In this document: piece after piece, positions 23,132 to 42,700 of the stretch | Layout: every line of letters starts with the position of its first letter | How positions within the stretch are numbered: position 1 is the stretch's first letter | From: Phaeosaccion multiseriatum | Taxonomy: Eukaryota; Protista; Ochrophyta, other classes | Length of the DNA: 64,000 bases | NCBI GenBank assembly: GCA_965112735.1 | Contig: OZ218963.1 | Location: forward strand, 62,001-126,000 | Reading direction: 5' to 3' | Program-made: the position numbers and the translations under genes | Notes under the pieces: generated by a model | Databases searched by the model: none | Seen by the model: the letters and a program-made list of their open reading frames with translations, nothing else | Told to the model about the DNA's origin: nothing

Positions 23132-23870
23132 TCAACACCGTTTAACCATGTTCCCCTCTGAGTCCATGATGCGCGTCACCATCCCGTTCATGTCCACCCT
23201 CGCCTCGTGCACCGTCACCCCGCCTCGATGCCTACCCCCCTGGGGAGGAGTGCTCCCCTGGGGCGGTACCACACTCTCCTCCCCACCTGGCTGCTGTGCA
23301 GCCAACTGCTGCTGCTGCTGCTGCTGTATCATCAACTGCTGCCCCCACCACTCGTCCACTGCCACCTCGACCTGGTCCCTGGCCGCCTGCCCCTCCGCCT
23401 TGGTGATTAGACCGATGAAGCCCCCCCCCCCCGCCCCCGCCAGGGACATGCCCAGGCAGAGAGGGGAGAGCTTCGCCATCAGAGACGCCACGCGGGGGGG
23501 ATTGGAGCCCGCTGCACATGGAGGGGATGGCAGTGGATGGACAGGAGGGGAGGGGAGGAGAGGGAAGGGAAGGGAAGGAAAGTGAGGGGAGGGGAGGGGA
23601 CGGCAGTGGATGGACAGGAGGGGAGTGGAGGGGAGGGGAGTGAGTATTGTTCAGTGTGTGTAGTTACATCACTTGGTTGTACGAGGGGCAGACAGGGGTA
23701 GGCGGTTATGCAAACAGGCAGGCAGATAGGAGGTAGGCAGACAAACAAGATAGAAAGACACTTCAGATAGTCAATCAGTCAGTGGGCCAGTTAGACAGAC
23801 AGAGAGACAGAGAGACAGAGAGACTGACAGACAGACAGACAGACAGACACACAGACAGACACACAGACAC

Positions 23871-23927
<57 letters not shown>

Positions 23928-25087
23928 GTCGCTCCTCCCTCACTCACCCGCCATGGCTTGTTTCTGCCCCCAATAGGCACTCAGACATGTCCCCACCCGC
24001 TCCAAGCTCCCCCCCCGCACCGCCTCGCACGCCTCCTCCGCCGTGTGTCGGAGCTGCCCCACGGCCGTAACGGTTTCTTGTGCCCTGAGGTGCCATCCCC
24101 TGACGACGGTCTGTAGCAAGTCCCTCGCCAGGCGTTGCTTGCCTGTGAAGACAAGCACCAACCGCCCGGAGAACATGTCCTGATACTCAGTAGTGGAGCT
24201 GAACATGTCCTGACACTCAGTAGTGGAGCTGCTCTTGCGTCCCTCCAGGGTGGAGCTTCCTTCCCCTGGGGTGGAGCTCTCCCTGCCTCTGCCCACCGGG
24301 GGCCCTCGTCCTCCTGCTGCCAGTGGGAGGGGCGTGGTGTCAACTCTGAGCGGCAGAGAGGCGTCAGAGCGCGTCACCTTCACCCCTCCGAAGAGGCCTC
24401 CCGCCTGGTCCTGAGGGGGTGGGGTAGTAGCGGTAGAGGGAGGGAAGGGAGGGAGGGAGGGAGGGAGGGAGGGGAGGGAGGGAGGGAGGGAGGGAAGGGA
24501 GGGGGGGGAGGGGAGGGAGGGAAGGGAGGGGAGGGAGGGGAGGGAGGGGAGGGAGGGGAGGGAGGGGAGGGAGGGAAGGGAGGGAAGGGAGGGAAGGGAG
24601 GGAAGGGAGGGAAGGGAGGGAAGGGAGGGAAGGGAGGGAAGGGAGGGAAGGGAAGGGAGGGAGGGAAGGGAGGGAAGGGAGGGAAGGGAGGGAAGGGAGG
24701 GAAGGGAGGGGAGGGAGGGAGGGGAGGGAGGGAAGGGAGGGAAGGGAGGGAAGGGAGGGAAGGGAGGGAAGGGAGGGAAGGGAGGGAAGGGAGGGAAGGG
24801 AGGGAAGGGAGGGAAGGGAGGGAAGGGAGGCAGTGAGTTGGAGAGGGACGCCACTCCATTCTGCTCTCTCTCCGAAAGAGTGACAGGGTGCGTCTCCCCC
24901 CAGCAGCCCTAAGGTGCCATCCCTTTACTTCGCTCTGTCTGTCTGATCTCGCTCTCGCTCTTCTATCGCTCCTCTCCTCTCTCGCCGTCTCCAATGTCCT
25001 TCTCTGTCACTCCCTCCTCTGCCCACGCTCCACCCATACCCCCACACCCACACCCACACCATACGTGCACACACACACCCACACACA

Positions 25088-25133
<46 letters not shown>

Positions 25134-25443
25134 CACACATGCACACACACCCACACCCACACCCACCTGCCAGCCGCCCCCCGTGGAGAGGAGCTGTTCC
25201 ACCAGCAGCACGGCGTGTGTGAGCTCTCCGTTGGACAGGGGTAGGCCCAGAGCAACGCTCACGGCAGCCAGCACCACCCCCGCCAGGATACTGCTTGTGC
25301 CCAGGCCCGAGCCCTGCGGCAGGCACGTCTCGGAAACCACCTCCAGCCCTATGGTGCCATCACCCCCCAGCGCCGCGGTGAGCTGTTCTGACAGGGGGGG
25401 GGTGGGGACCGAGAGGGGCATCGATATTGACATCGAGGAGGGC

Positions 25444-25483
<40 letters not shown>

Positions 25484-26543
25484 GTGATGGCGATGATGAG
25501 ACACCGGCCCAGGCGTCTGCGGTGTCGGGCAAGGCGACGAGGGGCAGCACATGAACCCGCTCTGTCTCTGTCTCTGTCTCTGTCTCTCGCTCGGCCTCTA
25601 CCTCCCCCTGCTGCCCTTGTTGCTCTACCTCCCCCTGCCGTCCTTGTTGCTCTACCTCCCCCTGCCGTCCTTGTTGGCTGCTGAGGCGCACAACGCACAA
25701 GACAGCAGCCTTGAGTAGCGCACAGGGGGCGGAGGGGTCGCAATGGTCCGCCAGATCGGCCAGGCTAAGGCATTCGCACGACACCTCGGACATCACACTC
25801 GAGGCCCTTGAGGAGCTTAAGGAGTCAGAGGCGTCAGGACCGCCAGGAGAGCTCTGCCTGCAGATGAGGCGGAGGCGGGGGGGATGGCAGCGGATGCGGC
25901 GCGCTGTCGCTCGGATTGGCGTGGGCAGGCCCTCCAGCCGGACTGCGGCGTTCACCACCACCCCCCCATCCCCACCCCGTCGACTGCCATCCCCATCTCT
26001 TTCCCCATCCACTGCCATCCCCGTCGCCATCCGCTCGTAGCACAGGGGCGGGGTGTCGCTCCATCCGCCGGCGAGGTCGAGGCGAGCAGGGGCCTCACAC
26101 ACCGCCGACTGCCCCACGGGGAGAAGCAGCGCTGATCCCCATCCACTGCCATCTTGTCTGACTTTGCCCTTGCCATCCGCTGCCATCTGCCTTACGAGCC
26201 GCTCTATGCTCTCCCTGGGCATGGCGAAGGTGCGTGCGGTGTTGACGGCCTTCCTGGTGATCAGAGCTGAGGCCCGCTCGTACGCCCTCGCTGCCCGTAC
26301 AAGCAGCTGGGGATTACCGCCCTGCACCCATTGGGAGCGGAGGGCAGCCAGCCTTGGGAGGGGGGAGGGGGGGGGGGGGTAAGGGAGAGGGAGAGAGGAG
26401 AGGAGAAGAGAGCACCGGCACCGCCGCGCAGCCTGCTGACACCCTGTCCTTCCTCCATCTCTTTTCTTCTTCCTCTCCCTCTCCCTCTCTCTCCCTCTCC
26501 CTCTCACCTTTTCCATACTTCCTTCATCTCTCTTCTCCTTCCT

Positions 26544-26692: not shown

Positions 26693-29600
26693 CCCTCGCT
26701 CTTTAAGCACTGCTCCCTCTCTCTCTCTCTCTCCCTTTCTCTCTCTCTCCCTCGCTCTTTAAGCACTGCACTGCTCCCTCTCACCTCTGCACGGCCTTGC
26801 TCCTTCCCCTCCCGTCCAGCCCCCTCCGGGCCCTCCTCCACAGCATGGAGTCCCCCGGTCCTGTCAGGTGCCCGCCCCCCCCCAGCGTCTCCGCACACAC
26901 GAGCAGTGCCGCAGAGACGAGCGCCAGGAGCCGGCTCACAGATGGCAGCACGCTGTCGTCATCGTCGTCGCCGCCAGCACCAGGAGCTGTACCACCACTT
27001 GCTGCACTTGTGGTGGCGTCGGCCAGGGCCTTGTCGAGGAGGGGCAGGACTTTGCCTTGCAGCGCTGCGAATACTGCCCCGCCACTTCATTACAAGTGTT
27101 ATTGTTGGCGGTTACAAGTGTCGTTGTTGGCGGTTACAAGTGTTGTTGTTGGCGGTACAAGTGTTATTGTTGGCGGTACAAGTGTCGTTGTTGGCGGTTA
27201 CAAGTGTCGTTGTTGGGGGGAAGAGAGGGGAGGATAGCGTGCACGTAAGTCGTGAGAACGAGACTGCTGCCATCTGCTGCCCTCTTCACTAGAGGGTACA
27301 GCGCCCGCTGCCATCTTGTGTCAACTGCTGCCATCTGCTGCCATCTTGTGTCAACTGCTGCCCTCATCACCTTAACGCCACCTTGCACCCCAGTAAGTCA
27401 CCAACCAACCACATGCTGCCATCCCCTCACTCCCCTCACTCACCTAACTGTCGGGTCCAGCCTCGCTGCCATCTCCGCCAGTCGCGCGACCACACGCTGA
27501 GGCTGAGGCTTGGGCTCTCCATCCACTGCCATCCTCCCTTCCCCATCCACTGCCATTCCGCCTTCCGCCTCCCCCCCCACTGCCATGTCGACATGATCGA
27601 TGCCAATATCGATGCCAATATCGATGCCAATATCGATGCCAATATCGACCCTCTCCATCCCCACCCCGCCCATCTCCTCCTCCAGAGCTCCCACCAAATC
27701 GGCAAGGCTGAGGTCGCCAAGGCTCCCCCATCCACTGCCATCCCCGCCCTTGTCGGCTGCTACGTAGGTGAAGCGTCCGAAGCAGCCTCTCGCCCCTCTC
27801 ACCCCTTCTGTGGCCGTGGGCCCTGCCGCAGCAGTTGGTGCTACAGCCATAGCCAACGCTAGCGCAGCGGAGACGCAGTCTTCACCGCACAGAACCAGAC
27901 CGCGCACGCGCCCCCCCCCTCCACTGCCATCCCCCTCCCCTCCCCCCTCTGTGAGGCCCTCTGTGAGCACTACACATCCGCCCGTCGCCCGCTGTGAGGC
28001 TCTCTTGCATGCGGGCACAAGGGAGTCCCCCTCCAAGCTTTGCATCCACTGCCATCCCCCCAAGTCCGTCATCCACACCGCGGGAGGACACTTTCCCACT
28101 ACACTCCCCTCCTCCACGCCAGCCGAGCCCAGGCCCATAATACTTCGCCTGGTGCCCATATGCTTGCCCATATGCCTTGTGATAAGTACCCTCCTCCCCT
28201 GCAAGGCTCTGGCTGACGTCACACACGTGCCCAAGAGGTCGGTCTGACACGCGCTGTGGTGCTCGGCAGTCGCCAGCAGTGCGTTCAGCAGCAGAGCACC
28301 AATGCCCCCCCCCCCTCCTCCTCCTCCTCCTCCTCCTCCTCCTCCTCCTCCCACCTCTCGCTGAGGCTCCTCCTTCCCCCCCCATCCACTGCCATCCTCA
28401 CACTCAGGGTAGGCTGGAGGGACGCACAGCACCACTTTGCTCACTGCGAAGCACGATTGGGAAGACGCCTCTTCAAGGACACCCTCCTATGGCAGTGGAT
28501 GGCAGTGGATGGCAGTGGATGGCAGTGGAAGGGAGGGGCGGGGGGGGGGGGCAAAGAGCGCACAAGAGGGGGAGGGGGGTTTAGTTAGTTAGTGGTCTTC
28601 CTTTGCTCTGTGTGCGTCTGTGTGCCCCCTCTCTACTCCCTCTCCCCTCTCCCCTCCAGTAGCAGCGAGGAGAGCAGCGGCTAGACATTCGTTTCGGTAC
28701 GCTCGTCCTCTGCCCTTCCCTGCCATCCGCCGCCATCTCCTGCCATCCACTTGAATCTGGACCCACCGCACACGCACGCACCGACGGAGGGAGGAGCCCC
28801 TGGGCAGTGGGCCAGCGGCGCAGGGCGGGCAGGAGGAGAGCCGAGAGGGAGGTGGTCTGCGGCAGACTTGAGCACGCCACCACAAGGGTGTCTATACAGC
28901 CCCCACAGAGGGCCCTGAGGAGGAGAGGGGAGCGCATGGCAGTTTGTGGATAGACACAAGTGAGAGAGAGGAAGGTGTGCGAGACGGTGATCGATGATCG
29001 ATGATCCAGCCCCCTGGGAGGGACCTATCCATCCCCTGCCATCCGCCGGTCATCCACTGCCATCCCCTGTCAGTACCTCGCGGTAGCCAGGCTATCATCC
29101 TCAGCAGTGTGGTGCTCACCGGCAGTGGCAGCAGTTGGTGATACACGGGCAGTCTTAGCCGTCGATACAGTTGAGAAAGCCGAAGTCGAAATCGAGGTGT
29201 TGCTGTGACGTGTCTTGTGCAGCTCTCTGCGCCACTGGAACTCGGTGTGCGGGTACGCTCGGCCCAATAAGTCAGCGAAGGAGAGCCTCTCCATGCCCAG
29301 CCACACGGCCGCCGCCTCCTGCACCTCATCCGCTGCCATCCCTTGCCCCTCTGCTTCCCCATCCACTGCCATCCCTTGCCCCTCAGCTTCCCCGTCCTGC
29401 CCAGCGAGGTGCTGCAGCCACAACACACTCCCCCTCTGCTCCGCACACGTCAGCACCGGGTACAGCTTGGCCTGGATGGCAGGGGATGGATGGCAGTGGA
29501 TAGATGGCAGTGGATGAAGGCCAGTGGATAGATGGCAGTGGATAGATGGCAGTGGATGGCAGTGGATAGATGGCAGTGGATGGCAGTGGATAGATGGCAG

Positions 29601-32522
29601 TGGATGAAGGCCAGTGGATGGCAGTGGACGGGCATGACGGACGGTTTGGGCGAAGGGTAACGGAGTGGCAAAGACGGGGCAAAGAAGGGGCAAAGAAGGG
29701 GCAGGGCGACACCTTGGGACAATGTCCGTCACAGCCTTGGCAGTCAAAGCAGTGGCACGTAGAGAGTAAGAAGCGGAGCAAACATTCCGTGAAACATTCC
29801 GTGAAACATTCCCCCCTTGCGCACGCACAGCCGTCGCAGCGAAAGAAGCGCATCCACTGCCATCCTCCCAGCCCCTCCCCTGCCACACCTCCCTGCCTTA
29901 TCTCACTGACTTACTCTCCACAGGGTCCTATCCTCCTCCCCCAGGCCTGGCCACACGTCCTCGGGTCCGCACTGCGCCGCCGTGAAGATGGCACTCCATG
30001 GGGCGCCGCACACGCGCCCACGGCCCCCGGGGTCGTCCAACCGTAGCTTCACGCCATCCAAAACGCCGAATAGAGTCAACACGAAGGGGCAGCGGGGGGA
30101 TGGAGGGTGCCCAGGGGGGTTGGGGAGGGCGGTCTCCTGCAGCACCATTTGGGGTAAGATGTGCAGGGGAGGGATTGCTAACCCTAAGCCACCCAATCCA
30201 CTGCCATCCCCCCCGCCTCCTCCTGCTGCTGCTGGTGCTGTTGGAGCGTCTTTTGCCCCGCTTACACAGGCCCGGCGGACTGGGAGGGGATGGCAGTGGA
30301 GGGGAGGGAGGGAGAGGGAGATGAACAAAGAAGAGAGTGAGTGAGAGAGAGAGGAAGAGAGGAAGAGAGGAACAGGGGGAGAGAGGGACGTGGGAGAAGG
30401 ATGGCAGCGGATCGTGGGCCTGGGAAACGGTGGTGGATGGATGGCAGTGGATGGCAGTGGATGGCAGCTCATTCTCCTGGGCCTGACCCTGACCCTGACC
30501 CCGACCCCGACCCTGACCCTGACCTCCGCTCAAGAGGCTCCCCTTGCCCACGCTCCACGTTGAGGTTTCCGACGTGACTTTGCAGTGCTCCAGTACCGCC
30601 CCCTCCCCCACAGAGCCCCGCCCGCCCAGATGGCAGTTCACGAGCGTGGCCCCAGCGTGCACCTCCACCCCGGGGCTGCCCCCCCCCTCCCCCCCTGGGC
30701 CGGCCTCCTCCTCAACGCTGGCACCCGCCCTGTGTCCGAGGTTGAAGGGCTGAGTGAAGTTGGGCATCCTCAGGGCCATCATCTCCATGAGCTCGCGCGT
30801 GGTGCCCAAGTGCGCGAAGCTGGCTGCCGGTACACTCCCACTAGCAGGCACCTGTCCACTAGCATCCCCAACCCCCTCCCTCCTGGCCATCAGCAGGGCC
30901 CCCATTCGAAAGGCGCTGAAGGCGTCAAAGATTGCTCTCCGCGCCACGGACAGCGCACAGCTCACAGATGGCAAAGGGGGCCCGCACCGCGCCAAATACC
31001 CCGCCAGCGCAGTCTCAGTTTCAGTGCCAGTGTGGGCGCCTGCTGTGCCGACTGCGAGAAGGATATCCGAGTAGAGCTCCAGCCTCAGGGCGGGGACCCC
31101 TTCCCCCTCCCCCTGCTGTGTGCAGCCTGCAAACACTTCCGACGCTGCCAACCCCCGCAGGGCCCGCCCCGCCCTCCCGTCCAGCACCACCACGCCGGTG
31201 TCCACGGCCACAAGCCGCCGCCGCCGTCCACTGCCATCCTCTACTGTGTCACAAACTGCTGTATCGCCAACGACTGTACCACCAGCTGACAGGAAGGCGT
31301 GGGCTCTCTCAACGTCGTCAAGGCCGGGCTTCTGTAGATACTGAGCCACGGGCTGCACGGTGTAGGGCCCCAGGAGGGAGGGGTGAGAGCCAGACCCAGC
31401 GGGGGCGGGGAGCCCTGCTTGCCGCCCCTGAATGGCATACACCCCTGGGGAGTGGGAGTGGGAGGTGGGAGGGGGTGGCAATCCATGGGGGGGGGGGGGG
31501 AGACTTGGGTCACAGCGCTACAATGTAAGCGTAAGAGACCCCAAGAGCTGCTGCCAAATGACAGAGCGTTCTTGGCGACTTTCAACAAGCCTCAGTCATC
31601 AGCCCCTCAGCAGGCTCTCAGGAGTAGATCGATCCCGCCCGCTGTCTAGACTGCCCTCGAACGAAGGGAATGTTGAAGAGCTCAAAACAACACTTCGTTC
31701 GTAAGATTACGTACCGTGTGCGCTGGCGTACGCCTCGTCTGCTGGCACGGCAAGCCCGCACACCTCTCCTCCCCACGCCCACTCCAGGGGGGGCGCCCCA
31801 GAGGGGAGGAGTAGCATAACGTCACAGGAAGTGATGACGAGGCTGCCCGGCTGCAGCCCCGCCCCCGGCCCTCCGAAGAGCTGCTGCGCTTGACCGAGGA
31901 GGAGGTCCATCGGTGTGCTCCACTCACGTTGGGGGGGCAGGTCCGTCTTCTGCTGGGCAGAGGAGGGGCGGAAGAGTGGGGTGGGCGGGGCGTTCAGAGC
32001 GGAGAAGGCCTTGCCGCACACGCACTGCGTCGCCGAGCGCTGCGAGTCTCCTCCCGAGTGCACAAGGAGGGTGGTGTAGTCGTGGGTGTTGGGAGGGGTG
32101 TCTGCGTCTGTAGTGTCGCGCACGGCCTTGTCGATCTCAGCAAGGGCGTTGATGGTGCCCCCACCACTTCCCACCCGCACGCCTTTCGGATCGGCCACGG
32201 TGACGCAGAGGATGCGCTGGGAGGGGAGAATGAGGGAAGGAAGAACGAGGGAGGAGGAAGAAAAAGAAGAAAGGAAGTCAACGGGAGGAGGTTTCGATGT
32301 GCACAGCGCCCCTTCCCGCCTTCTGCACCCAAACCTCACCTCTGCGAAGGTATCCCCGTCCCGCTCCTCCACAACCCCTCCCGTTAACAGCAGTACTGCA
32401 TCACACAATTCCGCGAGGAAGGCATTGGCCGCCCTCTCACTCGAGGCGCTCAAGGCGATCACGTCGAACGGGAAGCTCGCTCCCCCTCCTTGGCGAGCGT
32501 AGCACACCACTTGGTGCGGCAT
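23132..32522 (-). CDS. FUK: Bifunctional L-fucokinase / GDP-L-fucose pyrophosphorylase (fucose salvage) with an extra degenerate fucokinase-type N-domain
   Basis: Exons approx. 32522-31715, 31444-30524, 30279-29915, 29471-29077, 28914-28782, 28486-27444, 27084-26785 (acceptor uncertain), 26352-25167, 24410-23948, 23511-23132. Pyrophosphorylase: VADPKGVRVGSGGGT...HSGGDSQR...GKAF...HGVY...FAHLGTTRE. GHMP kinase: APARLDLAGGWSDTPP...LPQGSGLGTSSILAG...EQLLSTGGGWQDQ...LAGAGGGGF. Confidence 0.9.
23790..23925. repeat. (GACA)n microsatellite, intronic
   Basis: Visible tandem units. Confidence 0.9.
24437..24829. repeat. About 9-bp polypurine repeat (GGGAAGGGA)n, intronic
   Basis: About 390 bp of pure purine on + strand in fucokinase intron 24411-25166. 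Confidence 0.95.
27091..27213. repeat. 23-24-bp minisatellite (TACAAGTGTYRTTGTTGGCGG) about x5
   Basis: Tandem units in fucokinase intron; contains a variant of the GTTGGTGRTAC word. Confidence 0.85.
28489..28529. repeat. 10-bp tandem (ATGGCAGTGG)x4 abutting a splice acceptor
   Basis: Minus-strand intron ends ...CCACTGCCATCCACTGCCATAG at 28487. Confidence 0.9.
29474..29630. repeat. 10/14-bp tandem array of GATGGCAGTG(GATA)
   Basis: About 9 exact ATGGCAGTGG copies next to acceptor 29472. Confidence 0.9.
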
Positions 32523-32777: not shown

Positions 32778-35700
32778 ATGTATCTACCGACTGTGCCACT
32801 GGCCCTTCTCACCTACTGCCTGCTTCTGCCGCGTATCGCCGAAGGGCAGGCCACGACAAACCTCGAGTGCGCTATGCAGGTACTGCCGCTCCTCCCACCA
32901 CCCCCCGGTCTCCCGTCCCCCGTCTCCTCCTCCCGTCTCCTCCTTAATTTGAGAAAAATTAATTCAAAAAATGCCCCCCCCCGCGTCCGCCCGAACTTAC
33001 GCACCCCCACACCAACGCCCTTGCAGGTGCCTCTCGAGGAGGTGAGGAGGGGTAAAGCAGCCTTCTACTCCGGGTGTGACACACCGGGCGGTGAGGTCCC
33101 CACTGGTTGCTGGACCCCTGGGCAATGGTGGCGAGACAACCCTGGGGAATGGGGCATTGAGAACCAGAATTATGGCTGCCAAACCTGCGTCCTGCGTGAG
33201 GAGTGGGCGGAGGATTCCCTCTTCAACGTGTACTGGGGAGAGGGCGAGGGCTTGTCCGGTTCCGGGCTGCGGAGGGACAGCATCGCCCCGTGCCCGGAGG
33301 TACCCTTCCCCGAGGAGTGGCAGGAGGCGCAGTTCGGCTCGTCGGACCAATACGAGACGCTGTACGCTCTCATGTACGGGGCTGTCGACATCGTGACGGG
33401 GGCGTCGCTCACCAATGACACCGAGTGCGGGGACTACCCGGAGGACACGCTGTACAACAGCGCCGAGAACCGCTGCTACTTCAAGTCCAATCGGTGAGTT
33501 TGGCGGGCGTGGCCGGGTCAGACTTCCCTTGCCTGCCTTGCCTTGCTTGCCCCTCTGCTCCGCTCCACTCCCTGCCCATGCAGCTGCTCTGCTGCCGCTG
33601 CTCTCTCTCACACACTCTCACACACACTCCCTCCCCATCCGTCGCGTCTCTCCCCCCACTCAGCTACGACCTGTCCACGTCCTGGAACGCGGCAGTCGCC
33701 ATCTGTGACGACATGGGGGGGGCGCTGGTGGGCATCGACAGCGAGGCGGAGGACCAATGGTTCAAGCACAACCTTCTGTGGACGGGCTTCATGGGGGAAA
33801 CCTTCACCGGCCTGCACAAGAACAACACAGAGCAGGTCAGGAGGGGGGGGGGGGCGTGGTGCTAGGCTGCTGCTTGCTGCTGCTGCTTACTGCTCCTCTT
33901 TCTTCTTCTTCTACTCCTACTCTACTGCTACCACTCCCACTGCTACTACTACTACTACTACTACTACTACTATGCGACTACTAACTCCGCCCACGACACT
34001 ACTACCACAACGACAGAACTTTGTCTCACAGTCACAGAATCATCATCTCGTCACGTACACTTCCACTTCCACTCCTTGTGCATATCACCAACAGGTGTAC
34101 CGCTACGTGCAGTCGGACGCGATTTATAACCCGGAGGAGATGGACGTGGAGGACGTGGCGTCTTGGTACGGGGGGGAGGGACCCTGGTACCCAGAAATGT
34201 CCGCTGACACCGACTACGGAGGTATGTTGTGGATATATGCATGTGTTATGTGTGCGTGTATGTGTGCGTGCGTGCGTGTTTGTGTGTTTGTGTGTGTGTG
34301 TGTGTTTGCCCGAGCATCCACCCCCCCCCACTCTTGTTTGTTGTTTGTTTTGACGTATTTCGACCTCGACTTACGGAGTGAATGCGTATCGATTTTGATA
34401 TGAATATCGATGCCCTACCCCATATTTCGACCTCGACTTACGGAGTGAATGAATATCGATGCTCTACCCCCTACCCCTCCAGACCCGTCCGACAACCCCC
34501 GGACGTGCATGGAGTACTACCCCAACGGTACGTTAACGTTACCGGTGCGGTGCGTCCTTCTGACTCAGCCCCTCTCACCCCCATAACTAACGTGCTGACT
34601 TTCTGTGCTACCGTCTCTGCGTCTCTGTATGTGTCTCTCCCTGTCCCGTCGTCGGGTGCCATCTCCATCCTCCCCACTCGCCGCAGACCCCAAGCGCTGG
34701 AACCCCTTCAGGTCAGTGCGGGTCAACGGCATGGGGCATCTGTCGGGGCGGAGGCACTGAAGTTCACATTTATTTGTTGTTCCGTAGCAGAGCACTGCAG
34801 TGTATGAAGTCCCTCTCCTTCTCTCGCCCCTGCCTACTCATCCGCACTCCCGTCCTCTGCCATATGTTGCCATCTGTGACCCCCCCCCGCTCTCCTGTCT
34901 CTGCTCAGCTGCGATGTGCTCAAGCAGTACGCGTGTGAGCTCCCCAGGTACGTAAGAGGGTACGTAAGAGGAATGCAAGTGCTGTTCTGCTCTCGTCCAG
35001 TCCCGTCCACTGCCATCCTCCCAGTCCGTTTCATCTGCTCTCCATCTGCTCTCCGCCTCTGGCGTGGCGACTTTCGTTCGCCCTCACCCTTTTTTCCCTC
35101 AGAGACTGACCGTACCGTCTCCCCCCCCCCCCCCATCCACTGCCATCCTTCAGTGCCAGCTGCATCGAGTCCGGCGATATTGACTGTGAAGGCACTCCCC
35201 TCCCCGCCTCGACGGAGGGTCCTCGCGACCCTGATCTGACCTGGGGCCCCACTCCCACCCCGGCTTCCCCTGCCACCACTTCTGGGCCCACGGCAGCAGA
35301 GGAAGAAGAGGAGGAAGAGGAGGAGGAGGAGGAGGAGGAGGAGGAGGAAGAAGAGGAGGAAGAGGAGGAAGAGGAGGAAACCACTGAAGAGGAAGAGGAG
35401 GAGGAAGAAGAGGAGGAAGAGGAGGAGGAAGAGGAGGAAACCACTGAAGAGGAAGAGGAGGAGGAGGAGGAGGAGGAGGAGGAAACTACTGCAGAGGAAG
35501 AAGAAGAGGAGGGGGGGGAGGATGAGGAGGGGGAGGAGACTAGTGAGGAGGAAACTACAGAGAGGAGCACTATCACTGGGGGAGGTGCCACTGACGAGGA
35601 TAACGAGGAGGGTTCCACTACCACTGGAGGGGAGGAGGAGGAGGAGGAGGAGGAGGAGGAGGAGGAGGAGGAGGGGGAGGAAGAGGAGGCGGAGGGGGGA

Positions 35701-36180
35701 GAGGAGGAGGAGGAGGAGGAGGAGGAGGAGGAGGAAGAGGAGGACGGGGGCGGGGGGGAGGACGGGGAGGGGGAGGAAGAGGAGGAGGAAAGCACTGGCA
35801 CTGGTGGGGGTGCCACTGAGAGGGATAGCGCTGACGAGGAGGAGGAAGCCACTGGGGAAGAGGAAGGGGAGGACACCACCAGTGAGGAGGGTAGCGAGGA
35901 GGAGGGGGATGACCCTCCCGCACCCACTCCCGCACCCACACCCGCCATGCGTGGCGGTGTAGACGGGTCCGGCAGGTCGGGGGGCGGCGGCGAGGAAGGG
36001 GCAGGGGACGACTCCTTCTCAGTGGTGGGGCTCGGCGAGGTGGCCTCCATTGCCGTTGTGGCGGCGGCGGCGAGTATAGGGATGGCGTTGGTGGTGGCGG
36101 GGGGAGTGCTGCTGCACACGGGCAGCAGACAGGCACCCAAGCAGCAGGCGGGGCTGCGGCCTTCGGAGTTCAGCCCGTGA
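32778..36180 (+). CDS. Type I membrane protein: signal peptide, Cys-rich domain, C-type lectin-like domain, poly-Glu/Thr stalk, TM helix, short tail
   Basis: Exons 32778-32879, 33027-33493, 33664-33835, 34095-34221, 34483-34527, 34687-34711, 34909-34947, 35154-36180. Signal MYLPTVPLALLTYCLLLPRIAEG. CTLD: NRCYF...SWNAAVAICDDMGGALVGIDSEAEDQW...FTGLH...TC...WNPFSCDVLKQYACE. TM: VASIAVVAAAASIGMALVVAGGVLL. Confidence 0.85.
35297..35910 (+). repeat. (GAG/GAA)n-rich coding low-complexity region (poly-Glu stalk)
   Basis: Open frame from exon start 35154 to stop 36180. Confidence 0.85.
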
Positions 36181-36688
36181 GGAGTGGGGATGGTGGAGGT
36201 CCGTGAGGAGCGACAAGTTTGTGAGTGTTTTAGAGTTTATTTATTTAGAGAGCCTTTTTAGCCTCCCATCCGTGTATCCCATCACACCAGCTTAGCGCCG
36301 ATGGTTCCCAAACTGAGGCCGAGAGGAGGGGAGGAGGAGGGCGGCTGTAGTACTTGTATAGGAGGGGAATCCGTCATTGGAGGCAATGGGAGCAGAAGAA
36401 GAAGAAGAGGAGGAGGAGGAGGAGGAGGAGGAGGAGCGGGAGGAGGAGGAGGAGGCGGGAGGAACATCGGGTAAAGCATGGAAGGAGGGGCCGCACCCAC
36501 CCACCCACGCAACGGGGCCTTCGTCTGCTTGTCGAGTCGTGACGGTCGGGCCGTTGCAGTCTGATGGAGGGCGAGGGAGGACGAGGCGATGGAGCAGTGC
36601 CTACATGGGGGGGGGTGCATAGAGGAGGAAGTGTGTGACCTTTGTATAGAGGATGAGGTGTGTGACATTTGGTGCCATCAGCAGACCG

Positions 36689-36736
<48 letters not shown>

Positions 36737-37329
36737 GGCGAAGGCGAGGACTGCCCAGTCCATCGCTCTCGTGGGGCGGGGAGGAGGGAGTAAGTTGCTT
36801 AGGTCGAGGCTGCTGCAGAAGGCAACGTATTGTACTGTAGATATATACACGTGTTTGTGCTGACACCGAAGGAGGGAGGGAGAGAAGTGCTCTGGTCGTG
36901 TCGAGGTCAGGTGAGGTGAGGTAGGAAGCCTTGAAGCTATAAACTCTAACCAAGCTCTCTGGCAATACTTTCAGCACACTTCCGTTCTGTTTCACAGCAT
37001 AGAGGCCAAGCGCCGAGCAGGGATTGCCCTCGGACACTCTTCGTCTTCCCCTCCCACGGAATCATGGCCCCTCCCACGGAATCATGGCTGGGCCCCCAGT
37101 GACCCCGGCTCCCGGCCTGCTGATTCCCATGTCTACAAGCCCATCACTGCCATTTCTGGGGGCCCTTTGGACAAGCGATTTGATGATTTCATTGACTTAG
37201 CTTCTCTACGATTGAATGAATGAGCCACGCTTCGCCGCGGTGGGTAACAACGGCGATGATGAGGCGGGCGGAAGGCGGTCGGGTCGCTGTCTACATCTCC
37301 AGTCCTGAGGCATCAGCAGCAGGGCCCTC

Positions 37330-37510
37330 CACACGCACGCACGCTCGCAGCGCCTTCCGCCCGCGCTTCGACATGGGACTTGCACAATCCTCCTTCGATC
37401 CGATTCTTTTCGCACCCCTCGACAGTACACTTCTTGACCACAGCTCCATGGGACACGCACAATCCTCCCTGCTGCGCGCACCCCTCGACAATACAGCGCC
37501 TCCTCCTTCC
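37330..37510 (-). pseudogene. Degenerate WRKY19-like Cys/His zinc-finger repeats (C-x4-C...C-x2-H)
   Basis: RRCIVEGCAQQGGLCVSHG and KKCTVEGCEKNRIEGGLCKSH in ORF 37313..37657(-). The first repeat is shortened and the third (GGRRCE...RVEG) is split across frames. Confidence 0.5.
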
Positions 37511-37934
37511 CCCTTTCCTCATTCTTCTTCCCTTCCACACACCTCCGAACACGCTCCGAACAAGGAATAGAGGGTTGTTGGTTTTGGTTTGGGAGACGAG
37601 ATCCTCACGCGCATCCAACGCACACCAGGGATCAGCTCTGAGTGGCTCGTTCCTCACTTTGAAAAAAGGAGGTGAAATGAAATGATATGTAGGAGCAGCA
37701 GGCTTTTATTGACTTACAGGAACCTCCCTTCCCATATGCCTCTATACTGCCTCCAGGGCGGCCAAGCGCGTGCCAAAGGAAGCTCCGAAGGCCTCCCGTA
37801 TGCCTCTCCAGGGCAGGAAGAGAGCTCACCCATCGGCTCTATACATGAAGAGAGCTCACCCACCCGCTCTCCCCCCCCATCGAATGCAGCCACAACGAAA
37901 GAGAGACATGACTCATCCTCTTCCCCATATGCCT

Positions 37935-39741
37935 CTACACTGCGCACGCCTCCTCCAGCGTGTGTGCAGGCAGGAGCAGGTCTGTAACGGTTTTTCCGAA
38001 GACGGACAGCGAACAGAACTCCCTGCCTGCCCGGGAAGGCTTGTCTCTGCAGCTCGTGACGAGGTGCGTCACCTGTTGGTGGTACAGTCAGCGGGATTGA
38101 GTGGCATGTTAAGGGAGGAGGCAAGGGCGGCAGTGAGTCGGTGATACAACGGAGGAGGCTATCGGAGGAGGCGGGGGCAGGAAGGCAGGATACGCCCGAA
38201 ACATCATGCGGACTTGACTCGGAGCGCGAGCGAGCGAGGGACAGGCCTGCCACTCCCTCCCTCCCTCCCTCCCTCCCCCCCTCTCGTCCACTGCCGTCCC
38301 TCCCTTTCTCACTCACCACCTCTCCATTGAACACTACGCGAACGAAGTGGTCTCCGCCCCCCTCCTCCCCCTCCTCCCTCGCCCCCTTGCCGCTGGCGTC
38401 CCTCCCTTGCCCTTGCCCTTGCCAGAGCTCAAAGACCACGTGGGAGGCATCTGCAAAGTGCAAAGTGCACGGAGCAAGAAGCAAGGAGCAAGGAGCAAGG
38501 AGCAAGGCGAGAGCGCGTTGGCCCCTCTCGTTAGTACGCCTCTCTCTGCCTGCCCATACGCCTCTCTCTCTGCCTGCCCATACGCCTCTCTCTCTCTGCC
38601 TGCCCATACGCCTCTCTCTGCCTGCCCATACGCCTCTCTCTCTGCCTGCCCATACGCCTCTCTCTCTGCCTGCCCATACGCCTCTCTCTCTGCCTGCCCA
38701 TACGCCTCTCTCTGCCTGCCCATACGCCTCTATCTCTGCCTGCCCATACGCCCCTCTCTGCCTGCCCATACGCCTCTCTCTCTGCCTGCCCATACGCCTC
38801 TCTCTGCCTGCACATACGCCTCTCTCTCTGCCTGCCCATACGCCTCTCTCTCTCTGTCTGCCCATACGCCTCTCTCTCTGCCTGCCCATACGCCTCTATC
38901 TCTGCCTGCCCATACGCCCCTCTCTGCCTGCCCATACGCCTCTCTCTCTGCCTGCCCATACGTCTCTCTCTGCCTGCCCATACGCCTCTCTCTCTGCCTG
39001 CCCATACGCCTCTCTCTCTGCCTGCCCATACGCCTCTCTCTGCCTGCCCATACGCCTCTCTCTCTGCCTGCCCATACGCCTCTCTCTCTGCCTGCCCATA
39101 CGCCTCTCTCTCTGCCTGCCCATACGCCTCTCTCTCTGCCTGCCCATACGCCTCTATCTCTGCCTGCCCATACGCCTCTCTCTCTGCCTGCCCATACGCC
39201 TCTCTCTCTGCCTGCACATACGCCTCTCTCTCTGCCTGCCCATATGCCTCTGTGTCTGTCCTAACATTGACTTACACGGAGGCCAGTCGCAGTCGTACGC
39301 CCCCAAAGCCGCCAGCACAGGCGCGATGACTGTGTCGTGCCCCGAGAAGAGGGCAAACAAGAGGGGAGATTCCCCCTGGACCTTACGCGTGAAACCGTCA
39401 AGCAGTTCTTGGAGGAACGGGTAGATGGAAAGCTGAGAGGGGGGGGGGGAGGGGGAGGGGGCAGGAGGGTGGGAGAGGGGGGTGTGGAGCATGCAGGGAG
39501 GAGGGGGGGGGGGAGTGGACACGGCCGTCAGGGAGAGAGAGGGGAGGAGAGAGGCAGAGAAGAAACAGATTGATAGATAAAGAGAGCGACAGAGAGACAG
39601 AGGGAGCCAGAGAGAGACGGAGAGACGGACGGGTAAGGATAGATGCGAGAGAGAGAGTTTAGGCAAAGTCCAAAGTCGGTGCTCGTGCACGTACACCCCT
39701 ACACTGCCCAGCACAACAACAACAACAACAACAACAACAGC

Positions 39742-39784
<43 letters not shown>

Positions 39785-42700
39785 CCAACAAGCCTATTGA
39801 ATTGCCCCCCGCCCTCTGACCTTGGTGGCCTGATGCCCCCCCTGCCCCCCCAAGTACCGCATGCAGAAGTGCCTGTCGCTCTCGCTCTCCATGCTGCGAG
39901 CCGTTGCTTGGGGCAGGGGCAGGGGCTTGTTGTGGCAGATGAGGGAGTGGAGGTTGTCGGATAAGTCAGTGATCTTGGTGGAGGCGATGGACGAGTCGAA
40001 CAGGTCTGTTCGAGAGTATGGACGGCAGTGGATGGGAGCCGAGAGGAGGGCAGGGGATGGCAGGGGATGGCAGGGGGTGGGAGGGGAGGGAGCAGGGGCC
40101 ACAGGGAAGGGTTAGGAGGTGCACGAATCACAGGGAGGAGCAGGATGGTAAGGGCACGGCAAGAGCAAAGCAAGGGCAAAACATGGGCAAGGCATATGGG
40201 CAAGGCATATGGGCAAGATATATGGGCAAGGCGTATGGGCAAGGCAAGAGCAAAGCATATGGGCAAGGCGGGCATTGGCAAGGAACATGGGCAAGGCATA
40301 TGGGCAAGCAGCTCCCGGCATTGTACGGCCCCTCCCGCCCACCTGCCCGGCCTTGTCTTCATAGACCAACCCGCCAACCCTTGCTGCCGACCCATGGCGT
40401 CGGTTACTCACCTCCCAGACGCTCCTTGACGTCATCCCTGAGCGTGAAGGCGTCTGCCTGCTCCTTGCTGAGCCGAACCGCCCTCGAGCAGGACCCTTCC
40501 TTCTCCGTCTCACCCCCGCCCTTCCCGTTGCTGCCGAAAGGGGAAGAGCAGAGGGGAGGACAAGAGGGGAGGGGAAGGGAGGAATGCATGAGTGGCAGCA
40601 TATGGGATTCTCACTCAGAGAGTCAGTCAAAAGCCAAAGTCAAGTACTTGGCATCTACTGCCATCCATCGAAGCCCTTGCCGTGCAGTGCCATCCCCTCC
40701 CACCTGCTGGCCTGCAGCCCGATGCCCTGCATAACTTCCGCCGACTCGTCCTCGTTGGTCAGCAGCGTGATGCCTCCATCCGCTGCCATCCACCCCCCTC
40801 CCCCCGGGGGCAGCAGACCCAGCAGGAAGGCCGCGGCACTCTGCTGCGTGCGCATGTAATCGGTGCAGCGCACATAGAGCTCGTCTGCTGCCATCCCGCC
40901 TGACTCTGACCCTGAGCCTGCGGGCCCCTTCTGCTGCTTGAGGAGGCCTCCGTAGGCCTCTCCGTAGGCGGCCCCCAAACGGAGGTGCTGAGCGGCGCCG
41001 TACTCGCTGAGCTGCCCCGGGAAGCACTCGCCCTTGGAGGCGCCCTCCACCATTAGGGCCAGTGCCTGAGAGAGGAGGGGTGTCAGGACAGAGGGGTGAA
41101 GGGTGTCAGGACAGAGGGGTGAAGGGTGTCAGGACAGAGGGGGTGAGGGGTGTCAGGACAGAGGGGTGAGGGGTGTCAGGACAGAGGGGTGAGGGGTGTC
41201 AGGACAGAGGGGTGAGGGGTGTCAGGACAGGGGGGTGAGGGGTGTCAGGACAGAGGGAAGGGGCGGGTTGAGTGTCAGAACAGTAGGTGGGTGATGGGTG
41301 TCAGGACAGTAGGTGGGTGATGGGTGTCAGAACAGTAGGTGGGTGATGCGTGTCAGGACAGTAGGTGGGTGATGCGTGTCAGGACAGTAGGTGGGTGATG
41401 AGTGTCAGGACAGTAGGTGGGTGATGGGTGTCAGGACAGTAGGTGGGTGATGGGTGTCAGGACAGTAGGTGGGTGATGGGTGTCAGGACAGTAGGTGGGT
41501 GATGGGTGTCAGGACAGTAGGTGGGTGATGGGTGTCAGGACAGTAGGTGGGTGATGGGTGTCAGGACAGTAGGTGGGTGATGAGTGTCAGGACAGTAGGT
41601 GGGTGATGGGTGTCAGGACAGTAGGTGGGTGATGCGTGTCAGGACAGCAGGTGGGTGATGGGTGTCAGGACAGTAGGTGGGTGACGGGTGTCAGGACAGT
41701 AGGTCACAGGGAGCCAGTCGGGGGGGCAATAGACCCAATGAGGCCCAATTAATGAGGCCCAATCCACCCTACCCACCACCGATCAACCCATCTGTTCTCC
41801 CCCTGCCCCTCCCCCATACATTGCCATCCTCAAGACCCCTTCCCTCCCGTATGCTTAGACGGACTCCCGATAGCCAACACATGAAACAAAAAGCCCTCAA
41901 TCAGATGACTCACCAGCGGATGTCCCGGAGCCAGCGCCCTCTCCACCTCCTCCCCCTCTGTGTTGACGACCTTGTACCTGCCAATGGCCTCCCACGCCTC
42001 TGCCACATGTCCTGAGAAGGGCGGGCACATGAAGTGACTCTCCTCAGGGGCCGGGAGGGGACTGCTCCAAGGGATCTGGTGGATAGCGGAGCGGTCACCG
42101 TGCCGAATGGTCATCTGGTGGTGGTGGGGGGGGGGAGGGAGAGAGAGTGAGGGAGAGAGGAGGAGAGATCGAGAGAGAGAGAGGGAGCGATTCGGTCCAT
42201 CGCGCACACACACACACACACCCACACACGCACCTGCACCATCTGCAGCTCCAGGCCGTGGTCTTTGGGCAGGGGGGGCGGGTACGAATGCGGGGCGTCG
42301 CAGTAGGGGTCAGAGGTGGAAGGGAAGGGCCGCGGTACCTCATCTTCATGCGGCCGCTTCTTCTTCTGCTTCTTCTGCTGTTGCTGTATCACCAACGGGT
42401 GGGCTTGATCTTCGTACTGTATGTAGTCGCGGTGGACAGGCAGCCCCGCCCCTGCCCCTCCTCGCCAACCAAAGGCCGTCTTCCACCAAGGGCCCGCGCC
42501 TGCCCCTCCCTCGCCTCCTCCTCCTCCTGCTGCTGCTGTTGGTGCTATTTCCCATCCACTGCCATCTGTCTCCCCGCTCCTCACGGGCTGGAGCAGGGCG
42601 GCCCGTGCCGATAGCCCGAGCACGGTAACTGTGACTGTGACTCCGGCCCCGAGCAGGCCCATACGCCTCCACGATCTCTTGCGTGATGCTCCCTTGTCCC

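Follow-up and report, generated by a model that had tools for sequence, protein, structure and literature searches.

A likely fused GDP-L-fucose salvage gene of the brown-algal FK-GFPP type, with an apparent vestigial fucokinase-type domain, in Phaeosaccion multiseriatum

The window analyzed here is a stretch of 64,000 nucleotides of the alga Phaeosaccion multiseriatum (assembly GCA_965112735.1, contig OZ218963.1, positions 62,001 to 126,000 of the forward strand; all coordinates below are those of the window). It is GC-rich (about 62%), intron-rich eukaryotic DNA, and its minus strand carries, from 32522 to about 23135, a GDP-L-fucose salvage locus. In order of transcription this locus comprises an active-type GDP-fucose pyrophosphorylase (GFPP), a 162-nt GT..AG segment, a short degenerate second N-type domain, and a helical linker with a GHMP fucokinase (FK). 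An earlier note on this DNA had described such an enzyme at 26785-32522; the motifs it listed all lie on the minus strand where it placed them, and the locus reaches well past that range, the linker and kinase extending to about 23135. A search of the genome found a single locus matching Pfam family PF07959 and a single fucokinase locus. The parts are given below in the order in which they would be read; exon ends were placed by inspecting the sequence and by homology, and those marked uncertain are approximate. P0001 is a protein of the brown alga Choristocarpus tenellus and P0151 a 1644-residue EukProt protein; HMM stands for hidden Markov model.

32340-32522, minus strand: exon 1 of the GFPP part, with the start codon at 32522-32520 and the first nucleotidyltransferase-lobe strand, FDVIALSAS; it aligns with the P0151 N-terminus and has the donor GAG/GTGAGG at 32339.
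31715-32216, minus strand: exon 2, with the GSGGGT loop, HSGGDSQR...GKAF, CDV and H(G); PF07959 positions 5-110 (E 1.5e-14), and tblastn matches from many FKP/FUK N-domains.
30524-31444, minus strand: exon 3, with YLQKP, FAHLGTT and the start of the left-handed beta-helix; PF07959 positions 110-326 (E 4e-18), and 39% identity to P0151 residues 242-487.
29915-30177, minus strand: exon 4, the end of the beta-helix up to TLWR; tblastn match to P0151 residues 498-581 and to positions 404-479 of the active-type HMM (E 1.8e-13), with splice sites read from the sequence.
29077-29471, minus strand: exon 5, the last of the GFPP part, AKLYPV...ERLSF...EFQWRRELH and a low-complexity tail; HMM matches.
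28915-29076, minus strand: junction segment, a putative phase 2 GT..AG intron of 162 nt, holding the TGA at 29072-29070 and the ATG at 28937-28935.
28782-28914, minus strand: first exon of the vestigial domain, ALCGGCIDTLVVAC...RRWPTAQG, an open frame with an uncertain 3' boundary, not significant alone.
28058-28443, minus strand: core of the vestigial domain, VVLCVPPAYP, then GIGALLLNALLATAEHHSA...RVLITRHMG...AVWMTD at 28306-28058; exon boundaries uncertain.
27443-27900, minus strand: further open frame of the second domain, with GLVLCGEDC, FTYVAADKG, LSLADLV and RVVARLAEMAARL; an open frame only, with no significant profile match.
26785-27086, minus strand: helical-linker exon, LLALVSAALLVCAETLGGGGHLTGPG...; positions 312-353 of the brown-algal HMM (E 4.6e-8).
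25695-26352, minus strand: linker end and first part of the GHMP kinase, NPQLLVRAARAYE, then RLDLAGGWSDTPP; tblastn matches to P0001 and P0151, an HMM match, and found in the genome search.
25185-25394, minus strand: kinase exon with GHMP motif II, LPQGSGLGTSS; PF00288 (E 1e-6), and 53-54% identity to P0001 and P0151.
23949-24413, minus strand: middle kinase exon(s), QDQAGG...LVLVFTGKQRLARDLL...YWGQK; tblastn E 9e-26 (P0001) and 4e-24 (P0151).
23132-23515, minus strand: last kinase exon and stop codon, with GAGGGGF, the C-terminal GHMP motif; open reading frame (ORF) 23132-23491; tblastn matches.

Exon 3 may have an in-frame insertion around 31225, and 25695-26352 may hold short in-frame introns or insertions. 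The raw ORF runs straight through intron 1 (32217-32339, 123 nt), which keeps the frame and contains no stop.

The first domain proceeds through GSGGGT, HSGGDSQR and GKAF to CDV, HG, QKP and FAHLGTT, and on through the beta-helix part to AKLYPV...ERLSF. PF07959 matches it above cut-off on 31710-32522 (profile positions 5-110) and 29931-31481 (positions 110-326), scoring 54.2 and 66 bits on the two exon pieces (cut-off 34) and 64.8 and 52.6 bits in the genome search; here and below, window queries were single open-frame pieces rather than joined exons. Residue equivalence with the Bacteroides fragilis enzyme (BfFKP) was mapped through a profile of active N-domains aligned to the FKP structures 9iis and 9iit (E 6e-46), and the counterparts of BfFKP His73, Ser78, Arg80, Lys89, Asp136, His168-Gly169, Gln186-Lys187 and Phe270/His272 are all present; the roles of these BfFKP residues in binding GTP and fucose-1-phosphate have been described (PMC11982464). 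Judged by its sequence, domain 1 looks like a complete and active FPGT-type pyrophosphorylase, as the earlier note had held. A word search with a domain-1 exon piece returned only two fragments.

The helical linker (LLVRAARAYE) and the GHMP kinase, both recognized in the earlier note, are likewise present, the kinase with a PF00288 match and with its motifs GGWSDTPP, GSGLGTSS, GGGWQ/DQ and GAGGGGF intact, and it too looks active. A HMMER search with a kinase piece gave 1168 homologues, none of them near-identical, with P0001 the best. The window kinase gives colinear tblastn alignments with P0001 and P0151, and the kinase of P0151 matches that of FKP (E 7e-46). The introns of this part (24380-25260) contain long microsatellites, GT/CA runs and CCTTCC-type repeats, from which false ORFs of great length arise on both strands.

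Starting from P0001 and then from P0151, word searches brought together P0151 itself, the 'FK/GFPP' protein of Ectocarpus sp. CCAP 1310/34 (P0153, 1529 residues) and two Ectocarpus partial sequences. In these brown-algal relatives a full PF07959 domain with HSGGDSQR is followed by a LFPV...RLSF tail and then by a segment, about 200 residues long, that contains WDAV.., ..CVPP.., GPLVLNALLVVAERYSA.., MRVLL, GVWV and TYLGxDNA; the linker and the kinase come after it. The P0001 gene model (locus L001, 2188-2300) begins within an intron, and its 22.5-kb contig ends upstream, so that P0001 wrongly looks like a kinase devoid of PF07959; domain 1 of that species lies on another contig (P0156, a 400-residue partial).

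An HMM of the brown-algal region from RLSF to the linker matches the window in order at 29897-29073, 28486-27443, 27086-26784 and 26651-24966 (E 4e-6, 2e-5, 5e-8 and 8e-4, respectively), with noise starting at E 0.7. These ordered matches and the colinear parts make the window gene an orthologue, in architecture, of the brown-algal FK-GFPP gene. The two share the order of parts including the vestigial domain and the linker, the active-site motifs of domain 1, the phase of the junction intron and the position of the preceding intron; they differ in that identity is only 38-50%, GC content and genome size are far apart, and the host here is not a brown alga. A fusion of GFPP and FK was reported from brown algae in 2016, 2019 and 2024 (PMC5144679, PMC6418280, PMC11468063), and its product has been called 'usually bimodular' (PMC11468063). 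The earlier note regarded the arrangement as a third architecture of fucose-salvage enzyme; as a gene it is not new, being the FK-GFPP fusion of those reports. The three reports speak of 'FK' and 'GFPP/GHMP' domains only, and make no mention of a vestigial domain.

That domain was examined most fully in the brown-algal proteins. Compared by hhalign with animal fucokinase N-termini, the brown-algal domain 2 gave a probability of 95%, E 1.5-2.5e-8 and a score of 65, in an alignment of 113-121 columns that begins at the extreme N-terminus; the reversed control scored 14.7, and 20 column shuffles scored at most 27.7. Its score was 40 against active-type N-domains and 14.7 against the brown-algal domain 1, and in single-sequence comparisons domain 2 scored up to 49 against degenerate-type proteins. 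An AlphaFold2 model of P0151 residues 712-905, built from seven alignment rows that included no fucokinase sequences, has a mean predicted local distance difference test score (pLDDT) of 66.7 and a predicted template modeling score (pTM) of 0.68. When it was searched exhaustively with VIA-align against 48,161 chains, the top two were the pyrophosphorylase part of BfFKP, 9iis_A (Z 8.2) and 9iit_A (Z 7.3); the Z 8.2 match superimposes 136 residues at 3.3 A, model residues 1-160 on FKP residues 0-233, and the next unrelated chain had Z 4.2.

In the window itself, GIGALLLNALL...VWMTD (28306-28058) matches an HMM of the animal-type fucokinase N-terminus at E 7.5e-4 in a search of the window's 1530 open-frame segments; the best unrelated one after it had E 1.8, and an HMM of the active-type N-domain gives E 29 on 28306-28058. 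The animal-type set consisted of L-fucose kinases of a bird, coral, sea anemone, brachiopod and mollusc, whose labels were verified. The same segment matches the brown-algal second-domain HMM at E 2e-5 and is 41% identical to P0151 over 83 residues. By eye, 28782-28914 is colinear with the brown-algal WDAVAVVAP...ARRWLDS, and FTYVAADKG (in 27443-27900) resembles LTYLGADNA. A (GGA)n run at 28310-28355, whose coding status is uncertain, would supply about 16 glycines directly before the conserved core.

Several results weigh against a second N-type domain, at least in the form in which the earlier note proposed it. PF07959, expected there to match twice, found domain 1 only; the second domain was not matched at E<=1 in the window pieces or in P0001, P0151 and P0152. 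Foldseek found no significant match for the domain-2 model in the PDB, and the confidence of that model is moderate. The remainder of domain 2 in the window, beyond 28306-28058, does not match the brown-algal HMM significantly, so that only these central 83 residues are statistically supported here, and the strings IDTLVVAC, FTYVAADKG and LSLADLV quoted in the earlier note, though present, are not individually significant. Searches of the second domain against Pfam and PDB sequences gave nothing, or poly-glycine noise only. No match to the beta-helix and C-terminal part of a pyrophosphorylase fold was found between about 27700 and the linker exon at 27086, where there is no room for it, and this part is absent from the brown-algal proteins as well. 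PF07959 does not match twice because the second domain is a truncated and divergent vestige of one lobe.

These blanks would also suit a canonical one-domain FKP, in which 28914-27443 is intronic and resembles fucokinase N-termini by chance or as a relic in decay. Pfam is silent over that segment, the GC-rich window has many long open frames, the FKP of Chrysoparadoxa australica lacks a second domain, and tblastn with the N-domains of 150 kinase-search homologues placed them all colinearly on domain 1 and none in 28937-27440 at E<1e-3, and so none on 28914-27443. However, the core is conserved with brown algae (E 2e-5, 41% over 83 residues) about as well as catalytic domain 1 is (38-39%), noise in the same brown-algal HMM search sets in at E 0.7 or worse, and the second domain lies within annotated brown-algal proteins. 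Conservation of the core at the protein level argues that it is not a non-coding relic, and a one-domain enzyme is extremely improbable at this locus.

The profile, structural and cross-species results thus support what the earlier note had said of the kind of domain, if not of its extent: domain 2 is best read as an alpha/beta lobe of about 200 residues from a fucokinase-type (FUK/FCSK-like) pseudo-pyrophosphorylase domain, not a full pyrophosphorylase fold, and the similarity to fucokinase N-domains that the note expected over 27444-28914 is borne out for the core at 28306-28058 (E 7.5e-4). The domain has no GSGG loop, HxGGxSxR motif, QKP or beta-helix; devoid of nucleotide-binding and catalytic residues, it could not be catalytic and is predicted to be dead.

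Whether the GFPP part and the remainder form one gene turns on the junction segment. The upstream frame stops at the TGA at 29072-29070; a GT at 29076-29075 and an AG at 28916-28915, the latter preceded by a pyrimidine tract like those of the gene's other acceptors, would bypass this stop in phase 2 with the split codon AG/G. A junction intron of phase 2 is found in the window, in Ectocarpus (locus L005) and in Choristocarpus (L001), in each a few residues before the first domain-2 strand, and the intron before A[KR]L[FY]PV (before exon 5) is of phase 0 and at an identical position in all three. Fused mRNA without stop codons has been reported from Nemacystus decipiens and Cladosiphon okamuranus (PMC6418280, PMC5144679). 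The intron of the earlier note (28915-29076) thus has proper GT..AG ends and a conserved phase, and a single transcript in this alga is predicted from these features: fusion into one product appears likely.

The same stretch can be read as the gap between two adjacent unfused genes, an FPGT-like gene ending at TGA 29070 and a FUK-like kinase gene, with its own vestigial N-domain, starting at ATG 28937. The TGA is one codon past the proposed donor, where a stand-alone FPGT-like protein would end, and the in-frame ATG is 15 codons upstream of the first domain-2 strand, about where animal fucokinases begin. In the first annotation of Ectocarpus, GFPP and FK were entered as two genes, and short spacers do occur in the window, the ATG of the divergent neighbor lying only 256 nt from the ATG of this gene. 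Transcript support for the fusion was sought in four sequencing runs of one study; these hold 93-96% of the words with the introns included, and so behave as DNA, not RNA. All of this tells against a fused gene. The stop beside the donor carries little or no weight, since a phase-2 intron with a GTRAG-type donor usually yields one. Two separate genes, moreover, would have to fit a 3' end, a promoter and a 5' untranslated region into a stop-to-ATG gap of only 133 nt, and the ATG lies within a pyrimidine tract ending in CAG/G, like the gene's other acceptors. The phase of the junction intron and the neighboring intron are conserved with the fused brown-algal models, and fused mRNA is on record from two brown algae. 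Two unfused genes therefore seem unlikely; in a mixed version of that arrangement, transcripts that retain the intron would encode GFPP alone, and spliced ones the fusion.

Taken together, the locus is likely a single-copy GDP-L-fucose salvage gene, orthologous to the brown-algal FK-GFPP, with all four parts in one polypeptide of roughly 1700 residues. The kinase half would convert fucose and ATP to fucose-1-phosphate, and domain 1 would couple fucose-1-phosphate to GTP, yielding GDP-fucose. For domain 2 no more than a structural role would be expected, for example in packing or oligomerization of the kinase half.

Comparison with known fucose-salvage enzymes shows what is peculiar to this arrangement. 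The FKP/FKGP enzymes (Bacteroides fragilis, PDB 5yys and 9iit; plants) likewise carry an active PF07959 domain, a helical linker and a GHMP fucokinase in one chain, with conserved catalytic residues, but they have one N-domain and about 950-1100 residues, whereas here a further, dead alpha/beta lobe, about 200 residues long, precedes the linker. Animals have separate FPGT and FCSK/FUK genes, that is, an active pyrophosphorylase and a kinase whose N-domain has lost HxGGxSxR; both have their likeness here, domain 2 being most similar to animal fucokinase N-termini, but in the alga they lie side by side, and splicing apparently unites them in a single product. The dead domain also differs from the FCSK/FUK N-domain in being cut down to the alpha/beta lobe and in having lost the GSGG loop as well.

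The Chrysoparadoxa australica FKP (P0023, 964 residues) is the closest single-domain relative of domain 1, its tblastn scores of 91 and 96 bits being the best among the first 150 kinase-search matches; P0151 scores higher, at 127 and 148 bits. The Chrysoparadoxa gene (locus L006, 7649-13772) lacks both domain 2 and the helical linker, with a RLSY tail and the kinase motif within about 70 residues of each other, and it is so compact that the missing parts cannot be skipped exons. This short form leaves the ancestral state uncertain, which counts against the history favored below; it is probably a secondary deletion. In the Bacteroides enzyme, the linker is reported to be indispensable for solubility.

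As to origin, the earlier note left open a fusion of two paralogs or an internal duplication. Most likely, adjacent FPGT-like and FUK-like genes became joined, and splicing of the junction intron would now take out the former stop codon together with the former start region. A fusion of paralogs is favored over duplication because domain 2 is like fucokinase N-termini and unlike domain 1, and because the junction keeps what look like remnants of where one gene ended and another started. The competing idea is that the same polypeptide arose when part of domain 1 was duplicated within an ancestral FKP. A kinase tree lends it something, since the brown-algal kinase is there sister to that of the active-type Chrysoparadoxa FKP (SH-aLRT, the Shimodaira-Hasegawa-like approximate likelihood ratio test, 87) and does not group with degenerate-type fucokinases; this was a quick tree, a polytomy apart from brown algae plus Chrysoparadoxa, and it contained no monofunctional FPGT sequences by which the affinity of domain 1 could be judged. 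Against duplication, hhalign detects no similarity of domain 2 to the brown-algal domain 1 (score 14.7) but scores it 65 against animal fucokinase N-termini and, in single-sequence comparisons, up to 49 against degenerate-type proteins; two formerly complete genes would also fit the stop and ATG of the junction and the FPGT-like way in which domain 1 ends. An internal duplication is accordingly judged quite unlikely, and fusion remains the preferred origin.

A study of FKP evolution proposes one ancestral fusion for all bifunctional FKPs, and mentions neither brown algae nor a duplicated domain (PMC12732313). A bolder possibility, put forward tentatively and with slightly more doubt than confidence, is that the FK-GFPP of brown algae and of this alga stems from a second and independent event, in which an FPGT-like gene was fused to a complete FUK-like gene, apart from the fusion that gave FKP; the retained lobe would then be a selected structural or regulatory module, and the short Chrysoparadoxa form a secondary deletion. 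Since a distantly related alga shares FK-GFPP, such a fusion, if real, would either date far back among the photosynthetic stramenopiles or have passed from one algal lineage to another.

Two other features of the region may be recorded. A 15-nt motif (taken from 29065-29051) occurs in 57 copies in the 64 kb, on both strands and with at most one mismatch (28489-28529 being masked in the count), for example at 29474-29616, 29030-29065, 28383, 28043, 27729, 26140, 26006 and 31225. It is often found in short tandem arrays inside introns, one of which is 28489-28529. The motif has no stop in its sense frames, so that strings such as DGSGWG, MAVDG and WQWM recur in the raw ORFs and false ORFs stay open. 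Its use as an intron marker was considered and rejected, since it lies on both strands and also within open frames and so does not discriminate. Upstream of the salvage locus, a divergent plus-strand ORF begins at 32778 with what resembles a signal peptide, and the small distance suggests that the two share a short promoter region; in a search for a sulfotransferase/hydrolase neighbor cluster, seven ORFs in 32778-40731, used as raw unspliced frames, gave no Pfam match.

The fused FK-GFPP family was known; what is new is a member in an alga other than a brown alga, and the vestigial domain, which is apparently undescribed, though its presence is a moderate rather than a great surprise. A dead N-domain belonging to the kinase partner would account for the brown-algal type of FK-GFPP being about 450-600 residues longer than the FKPs of plants and bacteria. 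As a relic it would also record the route of the fusion, two adjacent complete genes joined by an intron, and it thereby bears on the proposal that all bifunctional FKPs go back to a single fusion (PMC12732313). For enzyme engineering, the junction may offer a natural boundary at which to separate the two activities. The gene, finally, is extended beyond the brown algae, in which GDP-fucose supply matters for fucoidan synthesis.

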